64,000 nt of DNA from Macrostomum hystrix (Eukaryota; Animalia; Platyhelminthes): assembly GCA_950097015.1 (NCBI GenBank), contig CATNEN010000001.1:9424001-9488000 (forward strand). The letters run 5' to 3'. Positions 9,301 through 32,119 of the stretch are shown here, piece after piece. The notes beneath the pieces are model-generated. The model did not search any database. It worked only from the letters and a program-made list of their open reading frames with translations, and had not been told where the DNA came from. The translations under genes and the position numbers were made by a program. Position 1 is the first letter of the stretch. The number at the start of each line of letters is the position of its first letter.

Positions 9301-10498
9301 TCAGGTGCAGTGGGCTAGCCTCAAATTGTTATAGTTCCTTGCCGCTGTTACCGCAGCCGCTGCTGATGAATAGGAAGCAATGATGCTGGATTTCTGAGAA
9401 GAGCTGCTGCCTAAAATACGAAAGAAAATTTGGCGTTATATATGACCTCTGAATGCACTCAAAATATTACTAGGCACGATCGGATAATCCAGTGTGGCGG
9501 GAAAAAGAAGCTGTGTTACTATATACTTAAACTTCTCGTAGAATGCGAAATCCACTTTGAAAATTATCTTTCGTCGAGGATGACTATAAGACGTATTCGA
9601 CAATAAGAATAATTGTTAACAATTGCAACAGGGCTTAGGGCAATGGCACATCTGACGATGAGCACACACGCACACAAATGCTGTTAGCAGACACACACTC
9701 ATGCAGGTGTGTACATCTGGCCTGACTTTCTCATCGTGTACACTTCACTGTGCCTTGGAGGTTGGCCCTCAAGGGCGTAAATTGCACGACAAGCTCCCAA
9801 GCCTTCTCTCCGCGGCTGCGCCCCAAATGAATGTGGCCTGGCCGTGGAATCGAGCTCGGAGACCTTGGTGCGAGAGGCAAACGCGGTAACCGCTCTGCCA
9901 CTCACCCCTGACCTAATCGATATTTAGGCTTTAATAAAATGAAATTAACTTTTCTTCTTCCCCTCGTACAAAGGATTCATTAGGTTTTTTGTCCTGATTT
10001 CGTGACCCCTTCATGATTCTTGTGACAATTATCATTTTCTTCTTTTAGTTTAAAACAGAAAGAATTTGTGACGAGAACAGTTTTTTTGTCCATAGTTGTA
10101 GCCACTTGAGTGACAGTTCAATTTCGACCCCAGACTGAAGATAGGCAAATACAATTCGGCCTAATGGCATGGGAATTGATGAAATGCAGACAGCTTGCGT
10201 CCCTTTGACCTGGATTCGGTAGAGATTTTAGTACGAATCGGATCCCTTAATTACCTCTAAATAGCTCTTTTTACTGCGAAAAAAGGAATGAACAGCTCGC
10301 GGATAATTTAAACGAAAACAGGCTTAAATGTTTCATGGTTGCATCGCATGGGCTTCGGACCCAAATTAACGCTTTAGCTTACCTGAACCAACGCTCAGTA
10401 ACGTTCCACCCGCTGTGGCCGTATTGCTGAGGTGATGCATCGGCAGGGGCTTTCTTGGAAGGCTGCCCTGACCCTCCTGCTGAAGCAGCTGCTGTTGC

Positions 10499-10530
<32 letters not shown>

Positions 10531-13500
10531 ATTTTGCGGCAGCGGTGGCGTGGCAAACGCGGTGTCTAGAAGTTGCTCGTTGCTGAAGCTGCGTCCAGCA
10601 TTCGCGGCACCCGACGTTGACTGCTGAAGCGGCGGTAGTTTGACGGTCATCGCAGATGGATCCTCCAACTGATGATAGTGAAGGAGCTGATGCTGAGGCT
10701 GCGGCTGATGCTGAGGCTGCGGCTGATGCTGATGCTGCGGCTGATGCTGATGCTGCATGGATTGCGAACGATTTGAACCTGTCGGAGGCTGAGGCTGATC
10801 ACCAGCGAAGACGTAATAGCACTGCTCAGAGAATGACGCCTTGTTCACCGTGTGCCGAATGAGTCCAGATCGAAGCAGCTGGCAGGCCAGCTTTTTCGCT
10901 TGCCGACGATCGCGGAAGCCTTCAACATGCAGCAGAAGCCAGTCCACCAGTTCACCACCGATGAACGCGCAGGGGATGCGGATCTTCAGCCAGACTCGAT
11001 CGCGCACCTCGAGTCCGCTGTCTGGAAGCCTCAGAGCGCGTACAATATCGCCGCCGTCAGAGTGCACCGTCAGAGCCACTGCAGCTCGCGCTGAGTGATG
11101 CAACTGCTGCAGCTGCTGCAGAGCCAAGTTCGTCGGGCGCTCGAAGTGTCCGCCAGTTTGACGAGCGGCTGCTGCCGCCGCCGTCGCTGCAGCCGTCGAA
11201 GCGGCCGCTGTGGCAGAAGCCGCAGCTGCAAGCCTCGCACTGGATGAACTTGATGAGCTCGACAGCGAGCGACTTCTAGCTGCTGGTCCTCCGGGTGGTG
11301 GCAAAGCGAACGGCATCGGCTGATGCAGCTGGTCTCCGATTAGAGATCCCACATCGCCTTCAGCTTCGTGTCCAGCAAAGTGATTGCTTCGACTGGACTC
11401 TGCTACAATGATGCCATCAGCATTCACTGCCGTCGCAATCGACTGAGGCGGAGTTGCCGCCACTCCAGGCAGTAAGACAACATCCGGGTCGACCAGGGCT
11501 TCTGCCTCTCGCACAGCGTTTGTGTGAAGTATCCAGGCGCGTGGATCTATTGGACGTACCGGCTCTTCCTGAGACACTCGCAAGTACTGACGACAGTTCC
11601 AGGACTTGGCCACCGTCAAACTGATTGGGCCGGCTCGCTGGACCTGCTCTCGAAGAACACGAACCGCGTCGTCGTTCTCCATCCGATCGAACGGAATGCC
11701 GTTGACCTCGAGAATCAGGTCGCCCGGCTGAATGCGGCCATCCTGATGTACCGCGCCGCCCTTCATGATGCTGCCAACGTATATGCCGCCGTCCGCGCCA
11801 CGCCGACTTGCCTGGCCAACAATGCTGATGCCAAGGAACTGCATGGACTCCATGTCCAGCGTCACTGTGATGATGTTCAGCGATAGAGAAGACTCTGTGA
11901 TGCTGCTGAAGGACGACGCCTGAGGGAATGCGGTGTATTCAAAATCAGGTTTCTTATAAAGTATTAAGAATAGAAAGACCACGATCTATTTTGCCAACGG
12001 GGAAAAGACCACGGGCAGTTTAAATTCCCAAACCGAATAACCGATTTTCGTGAAAGTCCATAATTTGGATCAAAATTTAACGTTCGTTTTGATGAACTAA
12101 TTATAAAAGCCGTCCGACGTCAGCATCGTCGAGATACTCAGCGATTCTTGTCGAATACTCTGTTGACAAGGACAGCTAACATTGCTCTGTATATACTGGC
12201 AAATCCATATTGGTTCAATAATAAAGAAACGGAACTATGATAGCCAACTTGGTTACATGATGAAATTTTGCGGGGAAAAATATGCCTTTTGGATTTTGCC
12301 ACCTGACATCCCGACGAGAATCGTTGAATATCTAGACCATGCCGATGTTTGGGATTCTGGAAGTTGTTTCATCGGATAGAGCGGAAATATTTGCGTCATG
12401 ATAGGGATTTTCATGGCGATTGGTTGAGTATTTTAGATTAGTCCTTCAGTAGTTTAAGGCCAAGCTCTAGAGCAGTTGTTAGCTCTAAAATCTTTGCCAG
12501 GAGCGTTAGCTGAACAGCATCCTCAGTCCATGGATTGAACAGTTGTACATGTGGTTTAGGTATCATTTTGGATCTATCTGGGGAAATCGACAAATATATA
12601 TTTTTAAGCGCAAAATTTTACTCCTCAAAGGTGTGGCGCTGCGATGGACGCGTATCACAGAAAGCAAGCAACTGTCTGCGTGGGCGATCAAGCTCAAAGC
12701 AGACAAAAAATCAAACTGTAAGCTGTAAATGCAATGAATTTCCGGGAGAAAAGTCTGCCTGGTCCACAGTTTGAAAGTTGCACTGCATGGTCAAGTCTGG
12801 ACCCGCCAAGCGAAAGTAGGCGGATATGCAATGCAAAAAGCATGTTCGTCCCAGACGTTTTCTAAACGTAAATACTCGTAGACGGAAGAACAAGCTTGAA
12901 GTCTGAAGCGGTTTTTGTACTTTTTTGCTTCGAAGCTGCATAAACTAGCAGAGAAAGTGTGCCATATTGAAACACAAAATAACCACCGCATGGTTCCATA
13001 TAGTAAAGTCACTTCGACGCATAATTTTGTACTTGTAATGGATGTTCCAGTATTTTATGACGGCATAGATAGCAAGTTTTATTCCTGTAAAAACATCGCA
13101 TAACGCATGGCAGTGATAACGTCCGAAAGGCATAGAAGCATAGCTTTTCGCGTTGAATTTAAGAAAAACAGCGTTCAATTTATAGGTATTACGAACTGTG
13201 GATCGCTTGGGTTGGCATAGCGGTCTACCGCGTTTGCCTCTCGCACCAAGGTCCCTGAGCTCGATTCCGCAACGAGGCCACATTCAATAGGGTGGAATAT
13301 ACGCCTCTGAGGGCCAACCTCCAAGACACGGTGAAGTGTACACTGCCTGACGATGAGAAAGTCAGATGTACACACCTGTGTGAGCGTATGTATGCGTACA
13401 GTATCTGAGTGCGTGTGTGCTCAGAAGACAACGGAATGGGAAGAATTGCCTTCTCGCTGGCTGCGGGTCTAATGTCACCAAAAGATGTGCTAATGCCGGC

Positions 13501-14927
13501 AACCCTCGTCAGCGTCTTCGCTTCGTCAGCGTCTCAAGTGTGAGCAGTTGACGATCGAGAACCTGTGAGGTTGTTGTCAGGGAGATGGTGTGGCATTGCA
13601 CGCCAAATTGCTGCACCAGAGCATACAGTATCTGTAGTAGGGTCAGGAGTGGATTCTCTTAGTCCTTGTTGACCAGAAATTTAACAATTTAGACATTAAG
13701 CTTGATGTTCTTATTTCAACTAGGTGGCATACACTCTCGTCTTCGTGTTACTCTTAACAAGTGTGTAAATTCTACAACAAGCCCCAGGCAAGTCTTCTCT
13801 CCGCTTGGCCTCACCGCAGAGTCGAGCTCAGGACGTTGGTGCTAGAGGCAAATGCATTAGACACAAAGAAAGGAATTGAGGTACATTTGCTGACAAAAAA
13901 GTGAAATATTATTTGTTTCGTAAGCCAGCTCACCCTACTAATCCTTGGAGCTTTTCTTTGGCGCTGTCGAAATCTATGAAAATAATTCGACGACATTGTG
14001 GTGGCCGTAGTTGTGCTGAATCTGCGAGATAAGAACGAAATATTATTTTCAAGTGTATTTGGAAGTTAAATCGACGATATTTTGTTGGAGTATATCGTTT
14101 GGATCCAATTTTTTTCTAGTTTCTAATCCCTTTCCCGTTTCCTACTATAGTTATCACTACAATCCCTCAGTTAAGATTTTTTAGCCCTAGTAGGGGGCTA
14201 AAAACACACCTGGACGATTCCGCTTCATCTTCGGAGTCAAAGAAGCTGGTGGTATCCAAATCGCTGCTCATAATCGAACCGGCCGTCTCATAAAGCTGCT
14301 GCTGCTGCTGCTGCTGCTGCTGGCTCCGATTGCGCTGCCGACCCGTCAGCAGTAGGTCGCGTCCAATATTCAGCTGCTGCTGCTGCCCGACGGGCTGTAG
14401 AGCGCTGCCATTGCGGGGTCGATGATTCGGCACGAAGGCATGGTACAGGTGCGCCAGTCGGTCCGGACGAATAAACTGCGGCTTCCGATGCTGACCTGCT
14501 AACAGGCGTCGACTAGTTGTCGATGGCTGCTGCTGCGATTGGGACGGCTGCTGCTGCTGTTGCAAACGGGACTGAGACTTTTGATGCTGCTGCTGCTGTT
14601 GCTGCTGCTGCCTCTGCTGAGTCCACGTGGCCAATGGCTGCCTGGTAATTTTGGCACTCTGCTTGTTGTTCAACTTCTGGAAGCTTGGAAACGGCTCGCT
14701 AGACTGTCGACTGTGCTCCGTGCCGTTAGCCGCAGAGCCGACTAGATTTCGGTCCGCGGCTGCGCTGCCGACGGCCCCTGTCGCATTGCTGCCACCTCCA
14801 GCTGCTCCGTTTCGATTCGAGGCAGCATTCAATCCGATAACACCTGAGGAAGCTACCTGCTGTGACGAGACGCTGTGAGATAGTGGCAGGCTTGATTGAT
14901 GATTCATGACTTCGAAATATTTTCTTT
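9301..14927 (-). CDS. dvl: Dishevelled homologue (basic region, PDZ, DEP). Exons 14927(or ATG 14907)-14210, 14021-13934, 11919-10383, 9410-9301; DIX exon(s) not found
   Basis: SSDLDTTSFFDSEDE, RASSFSSITESSLSLNIITVTLDM, FLGISIVGQ...GGIYVGSIMKGGAV (PDZ), EPVRPIDPRAW, SGLEVRDRVWLKIRIPCAFIG...IRHTVNKASFSEQCYYVF (DEP). All junctions are GT-AG and phase-compatible (2, 0, 1). The last exon ends LAHCT*. Confidence 0.93.
9631..9908 (-). mobile_element. SINE family A copy (intact tRNA head, internal deletion) in dvl intron
   Basis: Minus strand begins GGGGTGAGTGGCAGAGCGGTTACCGCGTTTGCCTCTCGCACCAAGGTCTCCGAGCTCGATTCC (A and B boxes). Confidence 0.85.
13208..13507 (+). mobile_element. SINE family A copy in dvl intron
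   Basis: GTTGGCATAGCGGTCTACCGCGTTTGCCTCTCGCACCAAGGTCCCTGAGCTCGATTCC head, followed by the family body and tail. Confidence 0.85.
13776..13862 (-). mobile_element. SINE family A 5' fragment
   Basis: GGCCTCACCGCAGAGTCGAGCTCAGGACGTTGGTGCTAGAGGCAAATGC matches the family head (reverse complement). Confidence 0.65.
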
Positions 14928-15804
14928 CTGAAATTGTCCTCAAAGTAATGTCCCTAGAACACTGAGGGGTATCTACTTACATCAAAACGCTTCTCTGAAT
15001 GTTGCTTTTCAAGCGAAGTTATTTACAAGGAATGTAGAGAAAGGCGATTGTGGTTGGTCGGCACGATTCCCAATCAAACTTGGAAGGATCGCCATCTTCC
15101 CTCTTACTTTCTCCCATTCCCCATTTTAGATCTATCCCAGCAGCCTCCGAGCACCAACCTCCTCCTCCCCTGACGGTGCCTCATCAAGAGGCTACCCCGA
15201 GAGTAATTAACAGTCAGCCAAGGGACTGCAGGGGCCGTGCTACCGTCCTGTCTGTGCAGGCAGACGAATTTCAGAAGCCACCCTACATCACCCCCTATTT
15301 GGCCTTATGGTCTACGGCTTTCTGTATCCGGGCGGAGGGCAGGGGCTACAGAAAAACTTAGGGGCAGCTTATAGAAACACCAGAAAGCACCACCGGGCTG
15401 GAAAAAATAAGTTTTTCAAGAATCAACTATAAGAAGCTTGGAAAGGCACTGCAGCTGCAACCTGTTATCGAGACGGACAGGAAAATTCCCTCGATGAAAG
15501 CGAGCTATAGAAAGCGAACTAATGAGAGGAGTCAAAAAAGCTCGACCACAATGTTTGAAATTGATTCTAACTTTGGCTACTGTAGCTGGATCAAATATAG
15601 CTCTCATAATGTAACCACTTTTTTGCATGAGAAAACTGATGGCAGAATGAGAAAAATAGTTTCAGTTTAATAAGCATTGTTTGGAAAGCAAATGTAACGA
15701 TAGCCAAGGTTCAATTTTTATTGCAATCCGATAGGGCTAAAATTGCAATGCTTGCTGCTTTGGCATCATAATATTATAACAGCTGGGCTGTTGTTCCGAT
15801 GCAC

Positions 15805-25568: not shown

Positions 25569-28500
25569 CTACAGACTAGTGCATTCGTTTTCATTGAGCT
25601 CGCTAGCTGAGTTCTGCTGCTTCTCCTGAAGCAGTTGGAGGGCGCTTCTAATCTTCTCAACCCTTTCCAGGTCCATGGTCTCGATGGCAATGCATCCATC
25701 CGTGATCAGTGTGTTTGCGCGCTCCAGACAGAACTGCAGATGCTCTAGCTTGTCGCTGTACAGTGCCAGAGTTAGGAGCTCTTCGAGATCAGCGTCTTCC
25801 TGCATCTCTTCGAACCAGCTGTCGACACTGTAGTGACTAGTCGGAAGTAGTTCGGCCTGCAGACTCCAAGCCAGGCAGCGAAAGTTGATGTACAAATGCG
25901 AAGCTCCAGTCACCGAGTGTCTCACTGTGATTAGCGAGCCAGCCTTGCCAGGTAGGCAGAAATCAGGCAGATCACTGATTGGGAAGCAGAATCGCCAGGC
26001 CCAGTCGGAGCCGAAGCCGCCTAGAATGCTCGAGGTGAGGTTTTTATACGGACTCCAGAATCTCTGCACCTGATGCTTAACCAATTCTGTAGCTATTCGC
26101 TCTGCCTCTTCTCTATTGGACTGTATCAGGCGAACCATTGTTAATAGGCAGAGCTGCGTACACCCGAAGACTTCTGGAAGTTTGCTTATCTCGGCTGAAA
26201 GTGCATCCATTCTAGTGACTTCAGCTTCTCTAAGTTCGTCCAGGCTTGGTTGAACAATTCGGTAGGCGGTCAACAGATTTTCTGTACGCTGAGAAACCTT
26301 GCCTGAAAGAAATGCCGACTGACTACCTAGGGGTAGCAGTGTGAACGGGTGAAAGTAGAAGTTGTCTGACTCAGTTGGCTTCACATGCTGCCTAACGCAG
26401 TCCAACAGATAGGGCACATTGTCGCGCAGTTCGGTTAAGCCATCTCGCAACCTAGCTTTGGTCAGATCAAAGTCGCCACCCAGCCCGGCATTCTTAAAGT
26501 ACAGCGGCGCATCCGGCATGAAGAAGTGGGGCATGCAAACATCTGGCGAGCTGTCCCAGTCAAGAAACTCCCGCATGATATCGATGGACGTTTTAAGAAG
26601 GCTTACTAGCTTAGAGCTTTGCCAGAGGCTACTGTCGGCGCTGCACTTATCCAGCATAAAGAACAGTAGTGTTTTAGCGTGATAAGTTTTCAGGCCCGGC
26701 GCTCCGTGGTTCTTTGGCAGCAAGTGTTTAAAAATGAATTTTATCAGTATGAACAATTGGCCCTGGATTGTGCTGAGGCTCTTCATGATTTGCTTCTCAT
26801 GAAAGCTGAAACTAATCCGCAGTTCGTTCGCATTATTTGGTCTCGTAGCTCTAACCAGATGGACTCTGGTGGGCGAGATCGTTCTGAAACTTTTCATCCT
26901 GCCTTCGTTAAGACTGCTGCAGCAGCTGAATGCGTGACACGTGTCCTGGGCGGGCCTGACTCCGCAGCTGTCTGTTCTCACAGCGGGATGGCTACCTGTA
27001 ATCAGAGAGGGGTTCCTTATTGACGACTCCTTGGCTGGGAGGCCACAAGTTTGAATCTAAATCCAAGGGAAACAGTTAGCCTTTAGCAAGACAATTCAGT
27101 ACATCCAAAACATACGTAACTTGTAAACGGTTATCACCATGAGCTCGTTTTACAAGGGTAGAAACTCGGGTGGGTTTAGCGGGCCCTGACCATGGACTGG
27201 ACGGCTGTATCACTGTACATCTGTGCCACACGGGTAAGTTAAGTTTCTGACTCTTACCTATTCTACTGTAATACCAAAGACGGGCTTTCAGTGCAATTGT
27301 ATATAATTAAGCCTACTAGGTTGCCTTCAACTCACCAGCAGGAACTGCAATTTGAGCATGGCCTTCAACTACTGCCAGTCTATGTGCGCCCAGGCATCTG
27401 CAGCCGCCCTCTAAATGAAAAGAATGGGCGTCGTCAGTCATCACAGTCCAGTCGATGTCAGAGTCGGGGGCTATCTTTCCGTTCAGCAGCTTCAAGTTGC
27501 AGCCCCAACCCTCAGCATAACTGCCAGTCATACTGATTTGGTCTTGGGTGTGATTCCGAACCAAGTCCTCGAGCTCCTCGGCGATCTCTTGTTGAAAGCT
27601 GACTCGAATTTGCTTGAAGCCGGCCTTGTTAAGCAGCTCGTGTATTATCATGCTCAGTTTTCGGTCGTCAGATTTTGATTCAACCACTTTTTCGCTCCTA
27701 TAGAACAACCAGGATGAAATTAGAATCATACGAGCGTATTTCTTGAATAAAGCGTATAACATCGTCGTATACTTACATTTTCATTGATTGAAAATTCAAG
27801 ACATCGTTGGTGCTAAAAAGTAAATTTTTATTTCATTGTATTAAATTCCTTCATTACTAACTAATGTAATACAAGAGATAAGTCATCTGCTTGAAAGCAT
27901 AATAATTGCTTCCGTATTCAAACACGCTCACCGTCCTAAAGAGGAGTCCCTTTGACGAAGCAGCAGAAGCACCACTTGCTGGCCAGACTCCACCGCCAGC
28001 TGCCAGCAGGTTTTCCCGTTCCTGTCGCAATGTCGAATATTCGATCCGCGTTCGATCAAAATTTTGGCGCTCCGAACTGCGCCAGCGAGGCATGCTCTGG
28101 CCAGGGCTGTCCGACCGTAGTCGTCTTCAGATTGAACTGACGCTCCGAGGTTGAGAAGTTGATTGACAACGTCGTGTTGATCATAATCCGCAGCTAGCAT
28201 TAACGCAGTACCAACAGACCTCAAGCCCTGATCTGGAGCTGGAGGGTTTTCTAACAGGGCGAAGATAATCGAAACATGCCCGTTGGAGATGCATTTATGC
28301 AGGAGCCTCTCTCGCTGCGTCTGATCAAGCCTAGACAGTGTCAGCTGAAGGGCGACGTTGGCCTTATTTGTAAAGCTGTTCACCGCGTCGATGGCAAGGT
28401 AATTCAGCATCTTGTCATCCATGATAAGCTCACTATTCTCCGCACTAAATAATTCATCGATATTTTCTATAGCCGCAAAGTAAAAAAGGCCAAATACGAA

Positions 28501-30332
28501 CTTACAAAGACCTCTTGCTGCGGCTTTCCTTGCCGCTTGAATGCAGACTCGACTTCTAATAGCCTTGCTATGTATGCGCAGTAGCAGGCACTTGACTTTC
28601 GCCAAGCTGCCCCTCGCGGCAGCGCTGATTCCAGCATTGGCATAGCACTGATCTCTAACCTCAGTGTCCGAAATTCGCTCGGCCATGCTGAATACCATTT
28701 CCCATAAGCGGCAGTCTGTCGCCGTTTCAGCTAATTCTGTCCAGCAATCGTCTCGAACAGCTGGATTACTGATGCTTGTCGCTAATGTCTGGGCTAGAGG
28801 CCAGTTTTGCTGTTTGGCTGCAGTAATGGCGTTTAGTGCGCCGCATTCATCTCTCATTGCCAAATCTGTGATCTCGCTTCTTGCCCGTTCTGACAGCTCC
28901 CAATGACCTTTACTGGCTGCGACCGTTGTTGAATCGATGCTGCACTCCAGTTTAACATTTCGATCGGCAATTTTGTTATTGAAGTAGAAAAACAAGTCCG
29001 TTTGGCCTGATTTGGCAGCAGACGTTGCGGAGCTCCTGTAGCCGAAGTCGCGCAAGGATTCAACGCTAATCAATTCGACAGCTTCAGTAGCAATCTCCCA
29101 CTGCCCTCTAGAGGCGGCAGATTTCGTCACAACGGCGCAGCACTCGTCTCTAAGCTTTTCGTCAGAAATTGTCTCTAGTAGATGAATGGACAAATCAGAT
29201 CGACCCAGTTCGGAAGCTGATATTGCTGAAACTCGGGCGCACTGGTCTCTTAATTCTTTGTCGCCGATTGACGGCAGAAGTTGGCTCACAACATTCCAAT
29301 ATCCCTTCGAAGCTGCAGACCTAATCGCACCGCTGCTGCACTGATCCCTCAGCAAAGGGTTGGAGATGATTCCCTGAATTCTAGACACGGTTCCATCATC
29401 TCCTTGGCTTGCGACGTAAGCGCAAATTTTGCTGCAGCATTCGAACTTGACCTTTTCGTCTCCGATAGATTCAGCGATGCCGATAACAGTGCTCCATTGA
29501 TCATGGAACTTTTTCTGCCATCCTGATTCCCTGACGCTATCGTAAATGGACTCGTCCTCAGTGGTCAGCATTGAGAAATATATTGCCATTTTCTGATGAC
29601 ACTCTGACGCAGCTAAGTCCGCTGTGTTTCTATAAAGTTCATCTCTGGCACTTGGTCTGACATGATGTCAATCAGTTGCTTCACTAAACTCCAGCGATTC
29701 TCTTCGCCAGCAGAAATCGCTGCGTCAATACACACAGTGTCTCTTTCATTGGAATCTGGCACGCATCGGACAATGTTTAGTGTCATGGCACTGGTGCTCC
29801 ATTTGGCAGCCGCATGCGCAACTCTTCTAACACAGTGGGTCCTAAGAATGGAATTTTTAATTGCTTGAATCAAGCATAGTGCTACTTCAAACTGACACCA
29901 CTCTGCCGCTTGACGAGATGCTTCAGCGCAATGTCGATCCCTTCTGGACGGGTCTTCAATCGCTTGGAGCAGTTGAACCATGGCCTCCCAGTGGTTTTTG
30001 TCGCGAGCAGACTTGGCTAGATCGTACAGAGCTTCGTCCATATCAGAGGCATACGAGTACGTAATGAGGAGTCTCCTCGCTTCGTAGGCGTTACCACTAG
30101 CAGCTAAAGAGGTAGCTGCTTGATAGCTTGCGCAATCAAGACTATCTTGCGATTCTGTGAGGCCAATGAGTCTAATAGTTAAAGGCAGGAGCCAGTTGCA
30201 ATTTTTCTTTGCTGCCGCTTTCTTCAGTAGCCAGACTTTTTTGCACCTTGTTGATTCGTTGGCGCTTCTGAACTCCGTAGAACCTCTCAGAATGTAGTGG
30301 CTACGTCTCAACATCTTTACGTCTCTCAACAT
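25569..30332 (-). CDS. cGAS-like receptor (Mab-21-family nucleotidyltransferase) fused to ~17 x 33-aa helical repeats and ankyrin repeats, ~1,396 aa. Exons 30332-27932 (1-nt frameshift at ~29652), 27697-27336, 26995-25569
   Basis: NTase motifs TGSYAEG and DSDIDW, a third Asp in QDTCHAF, then VHLV...ELRISFSFHEK, GLKTYHAKTLLFFMLD and CMPHFFMPD (Mab-21 C-lobe). Donor CG|GTGAGC (27932) joins acceptor TATAG|G (27697) in phase 2. Donor G|GTGAGT (27336) joins acceptor TTACAG|GT (26995) in phase 1. Confidence 0.85.
27950..28310 (-). other. Ankyrin repeats (3 clear, 1 degenerate) within the cGLR gene
   Basis: GTALMLAADYDQHDVVNQLLNLGA, GRTALARACLAGAVRSAKILIERGS, GKTCWQLAVESGQQVVLLLL. Confidence 0.85.
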
Positions 30333-31073
30333 CTCAACAGCTCTACGACGCTGACGACAAAATTCTAAAAACGTATCTCATTAAAGACGTTTTTTACATT
30401 TATAAATACTGCTTGAGATTCTGAAACTGCTATATGTAGAGAGAAGATCCGCTTATAGATATAATATTATCTGCACTTATGTTCTGATCCTGCCCCCCTA
30501 TTTAAAAGATTTCCTTATCTTTACGAATTCTACACTGAAGATTTTTAGACTGAGTTAAAAAAAATATCCACACTGCTAGCTACTGCAGAATGGAGAAACA
30601 GCAATGCAAGGGAAAGTCTTTGAATGTACATTTTATGAGCCCTAGCTAGCAAAAGAACGTTCGCATATCAGTGCTATATTGTGGCTGGCTTGAGTAGACG
30701 TATTTTGTAAGTGTACCTGTTGAGGAATTTAAAACCAAAAGGTAATAGCACTGCACATTTTATTTAAATAAAAAAGCAAAAAAATGTTACTGACTGCTGA
30801 TCATTTTATTTTGCGGTGACGTATCATCAGATATGCAAAGCATATTGATAAATCGATATATATTAACTAAAAGCGTATAATTCGCTTTTCTAATGTAGTA
30901 TCCTTGCAAATAACGAAAACTGCAGAGGCTCCGTTTAGTAGAGTTCTAGTTGAAAAGGATGTGCGCCGATAGCAAGCACTCGGCAGTAGATTTGCTTGAA
31001 GCGTGTATTTGTAGTAGTCTGTGCTAGCAATAATAGCTGAAGGAGTTTTGGTTATGACTGCGCGTGGAGTTTC

Positions 31074-31226
31074 TATTTATAGGCGGGAGCGCGAGTGGGG
31101 AACTTTCCAGAAGGATACCATACATGGCACACGCGCACACGAGAGAAGGGTCGAGAAGATTCTGGAATAAACAAATGAACTCACGCATCATAACAAATGA
31201 GGGAAGTTACTAGAAACTTCCAGAAT
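31074..31226 (-). promoter_or_regulatory. hsp70-type promoter: TATA box plus three heat-shock elements, oriented toward the cGLR gene
   Basis: TATAAATA on the minus strand (31081-31074). HSEs nGAAnnTTCnnGAAn at 31099-31113 (gGAActTTCcaGAAg), 31154-31168 (aGAAgaTTCtgGAAt) and 31202-31226 (gGAAgtTACtaGAAacTTCcaGAAt, 5 units, 1 mismatch). Confidence 0.75.
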
Positions 31227-32119
31227 AATTACACGATCGCCATAACATCTAACACTATCATTTCTCACTGTACATAGTGCATGAAGTCATGACCTTACTT
31301 AATGCTTCGGAAGGGACAAAACTAATAAAAACGAAGTTTGTAATTAAATAGTAAAACAAAAAGGAAATGACAGTTTCCTTGCTTTTAATTAAAGCCTGCA
31401 AAAGCCGTAAAATCTTGCAGATTAGTTATAATTTGACAAGAAAATGAGTTTTTATTTTCCTATATTTTAATTCTTAAAATATATGCTATTTAAATTTAAA
31501 TTGACAAAATCTTTCTAATTTTTTAACTAACACCCGATAGCTAGGCCCTACTATATTAAAAATATCTTTATTAGTCCAAATTACGTACGGGTTAAAATAG
31601 ACCAGGTTGGTAGCCACTATCTGTCTGTCTTTGTGTCTATCTGTTGTTACTGCTATATCTATACATGCGAAGGTGTGACTTCCTGTTAAAAATGGCTGAC
31701 CTAAATTGGCTATTTTAGAAAACTAGCAGTTAGGTAAGGCAATTAGTAATATTCTAAATCTTCATATCCACATGAAGATTATATCTCAGCTTGATTCTTT
31801 GTAGTACAGTCATTATGACAATTATGGTTAGCATTATTTACTGACTTATTTACAAAAAGTTCTCCTTCTGGTGGTTCTTGATTTATGCATATTGTTTCAA
31901 TATTAAAGGACGTTACAATAAATTAGACTTGTTTGATTAAATTATTTTTGGCTGGAATACTAGCAGAAATTTTTTGTCATACTTTATCTACACACAACAT
32001 AAAAATGTTTTCTAGAATGTGTGTTAGGGTACTTCTTGTTTAAGGTTCAGTAGGAACATTTAATTAAGTGAGTGGACAGTTCAATTGCAGAAAGACTCAA
32101 CATGGTAGGTGGTCAGAAG

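Follow-up and report, generated by a model that had tools for sequence, protein, structure and literature searches.

What do four adjacent minus-strand open reading frames (ORFs) in a flatworm genome encode, and do they still form one gene? The stretch that we analysed, hereafter the window, comprises 64,000 nt of contig CATNEN010000001.1 of Macrostomum hystrix (assembly GCA_950097015.1), and the four ORFs lie at 30332-29613, 29589-27928, 27762-27316 and 26981-25569, exactly where an original prediction, made from the letters alone, had placed them. That prediction joined them into a single multi-domain gene, with a repeat array and ankyrins ahead of a nucleotidyltransferase (NTase) of the cGAS/Mab-21 fold that carries a complete set of catalytic motifs. 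Pfam searches, a homologue model, a fold search and alignment all agree with this architecture. We consider it likely that the gene is one member of a very large family of ankyrin-containing cGAS-like receptors (ANK-cGLRs) in a Macrostomum-type flatworm. What is new here is a corrected structure of four exons, one of them a mini-exon, and a rereading of the repeat array as ankyrin; the window copy itself adds one diverged, possibly broken member to the catalogued flatworm cGLR family.

A single gene with four exons

The gene is one unit with exons at 30332-27932, 27812-27777, 27697-27336 and 26995-25569, comprising about 1,408 codons. The exon lengths reach this sum only with one base added at a frame break in exon 1. 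Its parts are the following:

29616-30332, minus strand: exon 1, first reading frame (ORF A, 239 codons), with ATG at 30332 and about seven putative cryptic 33-residue ankyrin-type repeats from about 30257 (ORF list, repeat register, BLASTP to the repeats of the Macrostomum lignano protein P0028)
29645-29660, minus strand: frame break, a -1 shift between ...IDIMSDQ and ARDELY... (sequence and repeat register)
28477-29644, minus strand: exon 1, second frame, with putative cryptic ankyrin-type repeats 8-19 at an exact 33-residue period
27932-28476, minus strand: last part of exon 1, in which three canonical ankyrins follow a degenerate linker of 66 residues, with a phase 2 exit (contig 27932-28214)
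27813-27931, minus strand: intron 1, 119 nt, GT..AG (spliced contig joint 27812/27932)
27777-27812, minus strand: mini-exon, 36 nt, in frame (TNDVLNFQSMK plus split codons; contig joint with 37 letters on the short side)
27698-27776, minus strand: intron 2, 79 nt, GTAAGT...TATAG, predicted from consensus sites and a fitting phase
27336-27697, minus strand: exon 3, the spine helix and NTase N-lobe (G-S, DSDID; contig 27353-27612)
26996-27335, minus strand: intron 3, 340 nt, GTGAGT...TTACAG, phase 1 (zero contig depth over 27141-27339; position common to the paralogues)
26394-26995, minus strand: exon 4, first part, with the third catalytic Asp, a short post-Asp segment and the Mab-21_C helical lobe (Pfam PF20266, profile matches, fold)
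25569-26393, minus strand: exon 4, second part, a family-specific acidic C-terminal domain ending at TAG 25571-25569 (conserved in paralogues; covered by contigs)

Splicing was read from contigs of two public read runs, aligned to the gene. In one of them, 27932 is joined directly to 27812 on the minus strand, with GT..AG ends. The first intron had been drawn from 27931 to 27698. The spliced contig supports its donor at 27931 but not its acceptor, as it joins 27932 to 27812 and not to 27697; the proposed intron is therefore two introns around a mini-exon. The second of these is predicted from its consensus sites and the contig's 37th matching base. With the mini-exon in place, the linker between the last ankyrin (LLLL) and the NTase (KLS) measures 33 residues, as in the M. 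lignano protein P0017. A direct 27932/27697 splice would keep the frame as well, but the contigs do not show it.

The other proposed intron, 27335-26996, stands as drawn: it has consensus ends, lies in phase 1 and fits the homologues without any indel. Its junction product, HAQIAVPA-G-SHPAVRTDSCGVRPAQD, equals in length both the M. lignano proteins and an intronless paralogue of the same genome. In exon 1, contigs from the public runs match 29727-29936 and 30272-30423 at 100% identity, and no contig in the two runs crosses the frame break or intron 3. Overall, the ANK-cGLR gene (minus strand, 30332-25569) is probably transcribed.

A cGAS-type nucleotidyltransferase with a complete catalytic motif set

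The window gene was searched exon by exon. The G-S motif (TGSYAEG, 27525-27520), the catalytic pair within DSDID (27465-27451; D 27459-27457 and D 27453-27451) and the third Asp (RPAQD, 26945-26943) are all present, and each is kept in every paralogue piece of our family alignment (A3) that covers it. Paralogue pieces carrying all catalytic motifs share 27-50% identity with the window exons; that the motifs are kept despite this divergence indicates selection on catalysis. The stretch from the third Asp to HLV, described earlier as unusually short, is indeed short relative to a distant subfamily of paralogues.

By Pfam, the fourth ORF matches Mab-21_C (PF20266) over 26726-26502 with 27.0 bits against a cut-off of 24.1 (E 5.2e-6), and the third ORF gives a weak, on-target match to NTP_transf_2 over the G-S...D-x-D segment. 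A first profile search of the PDB was swamped by giant ankyrin proteins. Repeated with A3, it matched by sequence in the helical lobe alone, with cGAS at 3e-5, cGLR1 at 1.3e-4 and MAB21L1 at 0.026.

The fold was modelled with AlphaFold2 on the M. lignano homologue P0002, which is 48% identical to exon 4, from an alignment that included the window exons and paralogues. The model is well defined (predicted local distance difference test, pLDDT, 86.3; predicted template-modelling score, pTM, 0.87). Foldseek returned cGAS throughout its top matches (E 2.6e-8), and VIA-align superposed the model on human cGAS with Z 20.9 and a root-mean-square deviation (rmsd) of 3.4 Å over 262 residues spanning cGAS 162-521; Cv-cGLR1 followed with Z 19.6. 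Within this model, strand 1 leads into G-S, strand 2 begins with the two Asp of DSDID, and an adjacent strand carries the third Asp. The cGAS/Mab-21 fold claimed for the C-terminal part is thus borne out on a homologue: by this model the NTase part is a bilobal cGAS-type fold, and by sequence its G-S / D-x-D / D site is intact. Catalytic activity is an inference, as are a ligand, a product and a receptor.

Beyond the region that aligns to cGAS lies an acidic, family-specific C-terminal domain of about 270 residues. It is conserved across the paralogues, with the motifs SDWAWRFCF, LYINFRCLAWSLQAELL and DLEELLTLALYS, and is well modelled in P0002 (residues 336-635). An Atlas search with this domain gave at best low-score (0.81) leads to mollusc Mab-21_C proteins.

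The alignment also reveals an H-x4-C-x(n)-C pattern in the N-lobe hairpin (27420-27385) and one or two Cys just past the third Asp (26942-26922), both family-wide (A3 columns 140-210). Judged from residue conservation, this set could form a small zinc site.

The N-terminal array is a putative cryptic ankyrin array

Upstream of the NTase, the canonical ankyrins are detected readily (ORF B residues 461-545; 28209-27955), with Ank_2 at 68.5 bits (7.9e-19) and Ank at 48.5 bits. The preceding array holds about 19 units (30257-28477) with an exact 33-residue period on both sides of the frame break and the consensus IsD..lRDeCcr.aA.SAAs.G.Welv..Ll... Pfam found no match over this array, and an Atlas search with it gave low-score (0.81) HEAT/TPR leads at best.

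By profile comparison it is the same repeat as that in the N-terminal array of P0017 (hhalign probability 99.8, E 1.8e-27). Against a canonical ankyrin (ANK) profile the window array scored 78% (E 1.8e-5) and the P0017 repeats 92.7% (E 4.2e-7), each ungapped over 81 columns and in the AA..G..LL register, with column-shuffled controls at E 0.1-0.9 (0.5-0.9 in the comparison for the window array). An earlier hhalign comparison of the repeat with single ankyrin sequences had been weak (P 0.005-0.009); the profile-to-profile version is clearer. By BLASTP, the second-frame repeats match P0028 with E 3e-34, and ORF A also matches the P0028 repeat region. In the relative PAA68676.1, a published domain table lists Ank_2 at residues 19-75, 51-139 and 246-327 (Li et al. 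2023, Table S2).

The array had been described as a repeat solenoid; on the profile comparison we read it as a cryptic, ankyrin-derived array of 33-residue units and not as a separate repeat class. If so, Pfam domain counts would understate the sensor part of ANK-cGLR proteins.

A very large ankyrin-cGLR family

A search for paralogues, suggested by the original prediction, was rewarded: the 220-Mb genome (42 contigs) contains at least 90 scored exon-4-like loci among 182 candidates. All 32 loci examined gave a match to the N-lobe exon, situated directly upstream of the exon-4-like piece wherever this was checked. In many of these loci, ankyrins precede the N-lobe exon, and one intronless paralogue holds all parts in a single ORF of 948 amino acids (aa). 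The window copy is at most about 50% identical to any other member; it therefore represents a separate, old lineage.

The closest homologues outside this genome are all M. lignano proteins, with ankyrins, NTase and Mab-21_C in one protein. Full-length relatives of 1,217 and 1,355 aa with the same architecture (P0017 and P0028) are in public databases. A library-wide profile search (A2) kept the ankyrin columns and was swamped below about rank 60, and is uninformative on relatives outside Macrostomum. In a cGLR expression screen, Li et al. (2023) included five M. lignano proteins, two of which (PAA93208.1 and PAA68676.1) belong to the subfamily of the window gene (PMC9980059). The same study found ankyrin and TPR modules fused to 13% of cGLRs. 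The gene is thus hardly of a "hidden" kind, as first proposed: these two relatives were already listed with Ank_2 and expressed as cGLRs, and the full-length relatives are public.

A canonical Mab-21 gene, separate from the expanded cGLR-like family, occurs once in the genome (C24:4853213-4853761, L013; PF03281, 128.7 bits).

Two family loci have unusual ends. At L017:3603-5987:+ (C1:367.6-370 kb), an open frame that covers a Mab-21_C/C-terminal domain carries on without interruption into the next tandem copy, through its repeat array and ankyrins; two neighbouring family genes thus appear to be fused or read through. At L015:2336-5911:- (C2:3.317-3.321 Mb), the last exon of a paralogue is prolonged by a 13-residue tandem repeat (HPSKLRASSVN-type) that spans about 700 residues up to the stop.

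Is the window copy intact?

The 1-nt slip claimed earlier is present in the assembly. Both frames are open over 29667-29613, and one extra base between caa and gcc, at about 29651-29649, is needed to carry the 33-residue register and the I-S-D-x3-R-D motif past the break. The stretch is single-copy, with no second haplotype in the assembly. We take the one-base deficit near 29650 for an indel, of the assembly or of an allele, or else for an inactivation of very recent date.

Several points weigh against an intact, catalytic and expressed family member. The library type of the two read runs is not on record, and their contig depth over 29529-29727, which includes the break, is about zero. The break stands in the assembly, outside any homopolymer, and some scored paralogue matches carry in-frame stop codons, so decay does occur in the family. 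The Pfam Mab-21 core, PF03281, is unmatched in the window exons, P0001, P0002 and L016, even at E 10; the same model does detect the canonical Mab-21 of the genome. The fold was modelled on the 48%-identical P0002 and not on the window protein. Finally, the main text of Li et al. names no M. lignano enzyme, and we therefore found no published activity for the family (PMC9980059).

Were the deletion real, translation would end at TAG 29615-29613, and the remainder would be a decaying, still-transcribed relic, in a family whose genes often arise and are lost. The position of the break outside any homopolymer would fit such a young pseudogene, as would the in-frame stops of other members and a single-copy locus whose lack of a second haplotype leaves nothing to contradict the deletion; at about 50% identity to every other member, the window copy also has no close intact twin. 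On the other hand, about 4.2 kb of coding sequence shows this single defect, every splice site is intact, as are the catalytic residues and the framework residues of the repeats, and contigs of 100% identity lie on all main exons. We hold a young pseudogene to be doubtful, if still of appreciable weight. The break could also separate two products: a short repeat protein of 239 aa that starts at ATG 30332, and one of about 1,160 aa (12 repeats, ankyrins and NTase) that starts at ATG 29589, the latter by reinitiation, an internal start or trans-splicing. ORF B does have its own ATG at 29589, 24 nt after the ORF A stop, but the repeat register and motif run through the break, in the ORF B frame, upstream of that ATG, and both P0017 and P0028 carry one uninterrupted array; this arrangement is most improbable.

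The third alternative concerns the NTase itself, which could use its cGAS fold for binding only, as a non-catalytic Mab-21-like scaffold. MAB21L1 is thought to be such a scaffold protein. The undetected Pfam core, the alignment by sequence of the helical lobe alone and the missing report of activity for any M. lignano member would be consistent with this role. Against it stand the G-S, D-x-D and third Asp residues, which all aligned paralogue pieces retain despite an identity of 27-50%, the separate canonical Mab-21 gene in the genome, and the profile search, in which cGAS and cGLR1 outrank MAB21L1. We consider a scaffold role very unlikely, and favour a single ANK-cGLR gene with a catalytic NTase.

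STING-like genes in the same genome

The original prediction had suggested signalling without STING. A genome search with the Pfam STING ligand-binding domain (LBD) model, STING_LBD, gave a near-threshold match, with 25 bits against a cut-off of 27, seen in 5 of 10 members. The corresponding STING-LBD-like ORF occurs at no fewer than 13 loci, in a cluster at C2:8.97-9.10 Mb and on C39, C38 and C7 (L034-L044). These diverged domains begin with the motif GEAFAWNF.TFLRLI.PNL and have WASP in place of YATP.

A profile of ten members matched 64 PDB sequences; the 60 that were listed are without exception STING chains, the best at 7.5e-5. Although the structural model is poor (pLDDT 60.6), Foldseek still ranked STING first (E 4.7e-6), and in an unbiased VIA-align search the top 11 matches were STING (Z 9.4-6.3). 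The C-terminal part shows weak TIR-like matches (Z about 5). A single-sequence homologue search with the ORF found no relative, and a profile search just one in the databases, P0176, which is an M. lignano 'Death domain-containing protein'. The LBD exons showed no transmembrane part, and as far as their sequences indicate, the STING-like proteins appear to be membrane-free.

Because at least 13 such loci lie in the same genome, signalling without STING is unlikely. Basal flatworms seem to have kept the pathway in both its halves, with at least 90 loci of the cGLR-like and at least 13 of the STING-like kind.

Genomic neighbourhood and upstream element

The neighbours of the gene are ordinary animal genes, including a minus-strand Dishevelled homologue (10366-14943) with PDZ, DEP and Dishevelled-specific domains. 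Here, the cGLR gene lies outside any immune-gene cluster.

Upstream of the gene, all three perfect TTCnnGAAnnTTC sites (heat-shock elements, HSEs) of the window fall within 31100-31225, before a TATA box; TATAAATAG lies at 31079-31071. The surrounding segment (30892-31250, minus strand), which begins about 560 bp upstream of the gene, belongs to a dispersed repeat about 355 bp long. At least 40 copies of it occur, seven of them at 86-94% identity; L047-L051 are among the loci that carry copies. A 70%-identical subfamily of this repeat forms direct pairs about 4.73 kb apart, like the long terminal repeats (LTRs) of retrotransposons. The upstream repeat is probably a solo LTR with heat-shock elements, to judge from its copies. 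A dedicated heat-shock promoter of the cGLR gene was considered and rejected, because the element sits in a dispersed LTR-like repeat.

A possible sensing mechanism

The NTase core is about neutral (37 K+R, 38 D+E) and the whole protein is acidic by composition, while cGLRs that sense double-stranded DNA (dsDNA) or double-stranded RNA (dsRNA) have an isoelectric point (pI) above 8.5 (Li et al., PMC9980059). A non-nucleic-acid ligand, proposed earlier, is plausible in this light; the acidic composition together with the long ankyrin array would fit one, probably a protein. In the mechanism that we envisage, the ankyrin array would bind, or be released by, such a ligand; this event would switch on the NTase, the activated NTase would make a nucleotide second messenger, and soluble STING-like proteins encoded elsewhere in the genome would read it.

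The fullest version of this model would combine an old, separate lineage, a 19-unit cryptic array sensing a non-nucleic-acid ligand, expression driven by the HSE-bearing solo LTR, and soluble STING-like receptors fused to TIR-like parts that read the product. As a whole we judge it very unlikely. If it were true, a phylum reported to have no such network would possess a complete cGLR-STING system linked to stress.

Comparison with known systems

The nearest known systems are the ANK-cGLRs of M. lignano (PAA93208.1 and PAA68676.1, which are cGLR-92 and -93 of Li et al. 2023; PAA62074.1, which is P0017; and A0A1I8JJ31, which is P0028). They have the same domain order, share the motifs TGSYAEGW, DSDIDWTV and GVRPAQDTC with the window gene, place an intron after HAQV at the same position and are 45-49% identical over exon 4. 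Apart from coming from another species, the window copy differs in its one-base frame break and in its repeats: those of P0017 are near-identical to one another, whereas those of the window are mutually diverged and invisible to Pfam.

Vertebrate cGAS (PDB 7ftu, 4k9b) shares the bilobal NTase fold, with G-S, the acidic pair and the third Asp predicted at the same secondary-structure places, at 19-21% identity. In contrast to cGAS, the window protein lacks a basic DNA-binding surface by composition and has a shorter segment after the third Asp, an additional N-terminal ankyrin array and the C-terminal domain of about 270 aa. The repeat-appended cGLRs of other invertebrates (Cv-cGLR1, PDB 8gjw; ANK-cGLRs of S. 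pistillata) have the cGLR fold in common with the window protein, whose array is much longer and cryptic. To our knowledge, the activating ligands of invertebrate cGLRs have so far been dsRNA or dsDNA, and we know of none for any ANK-fused cGLR.

MAB21L1 (PDB 5eog) and the canonical Mab-21 gene of the genome (L013) belong to the same superfamily and share the same C-lobe. Mab21L1, Mab21L2 and Mab21L3 are without a predicted functional active site (Li et al., PMC9980059). In contrast to MAB21L1, the window gene has all three acidic residues and G-S, and its family profile ranks cGAS (3e-5) ahead of MAB21L1 (0.026).

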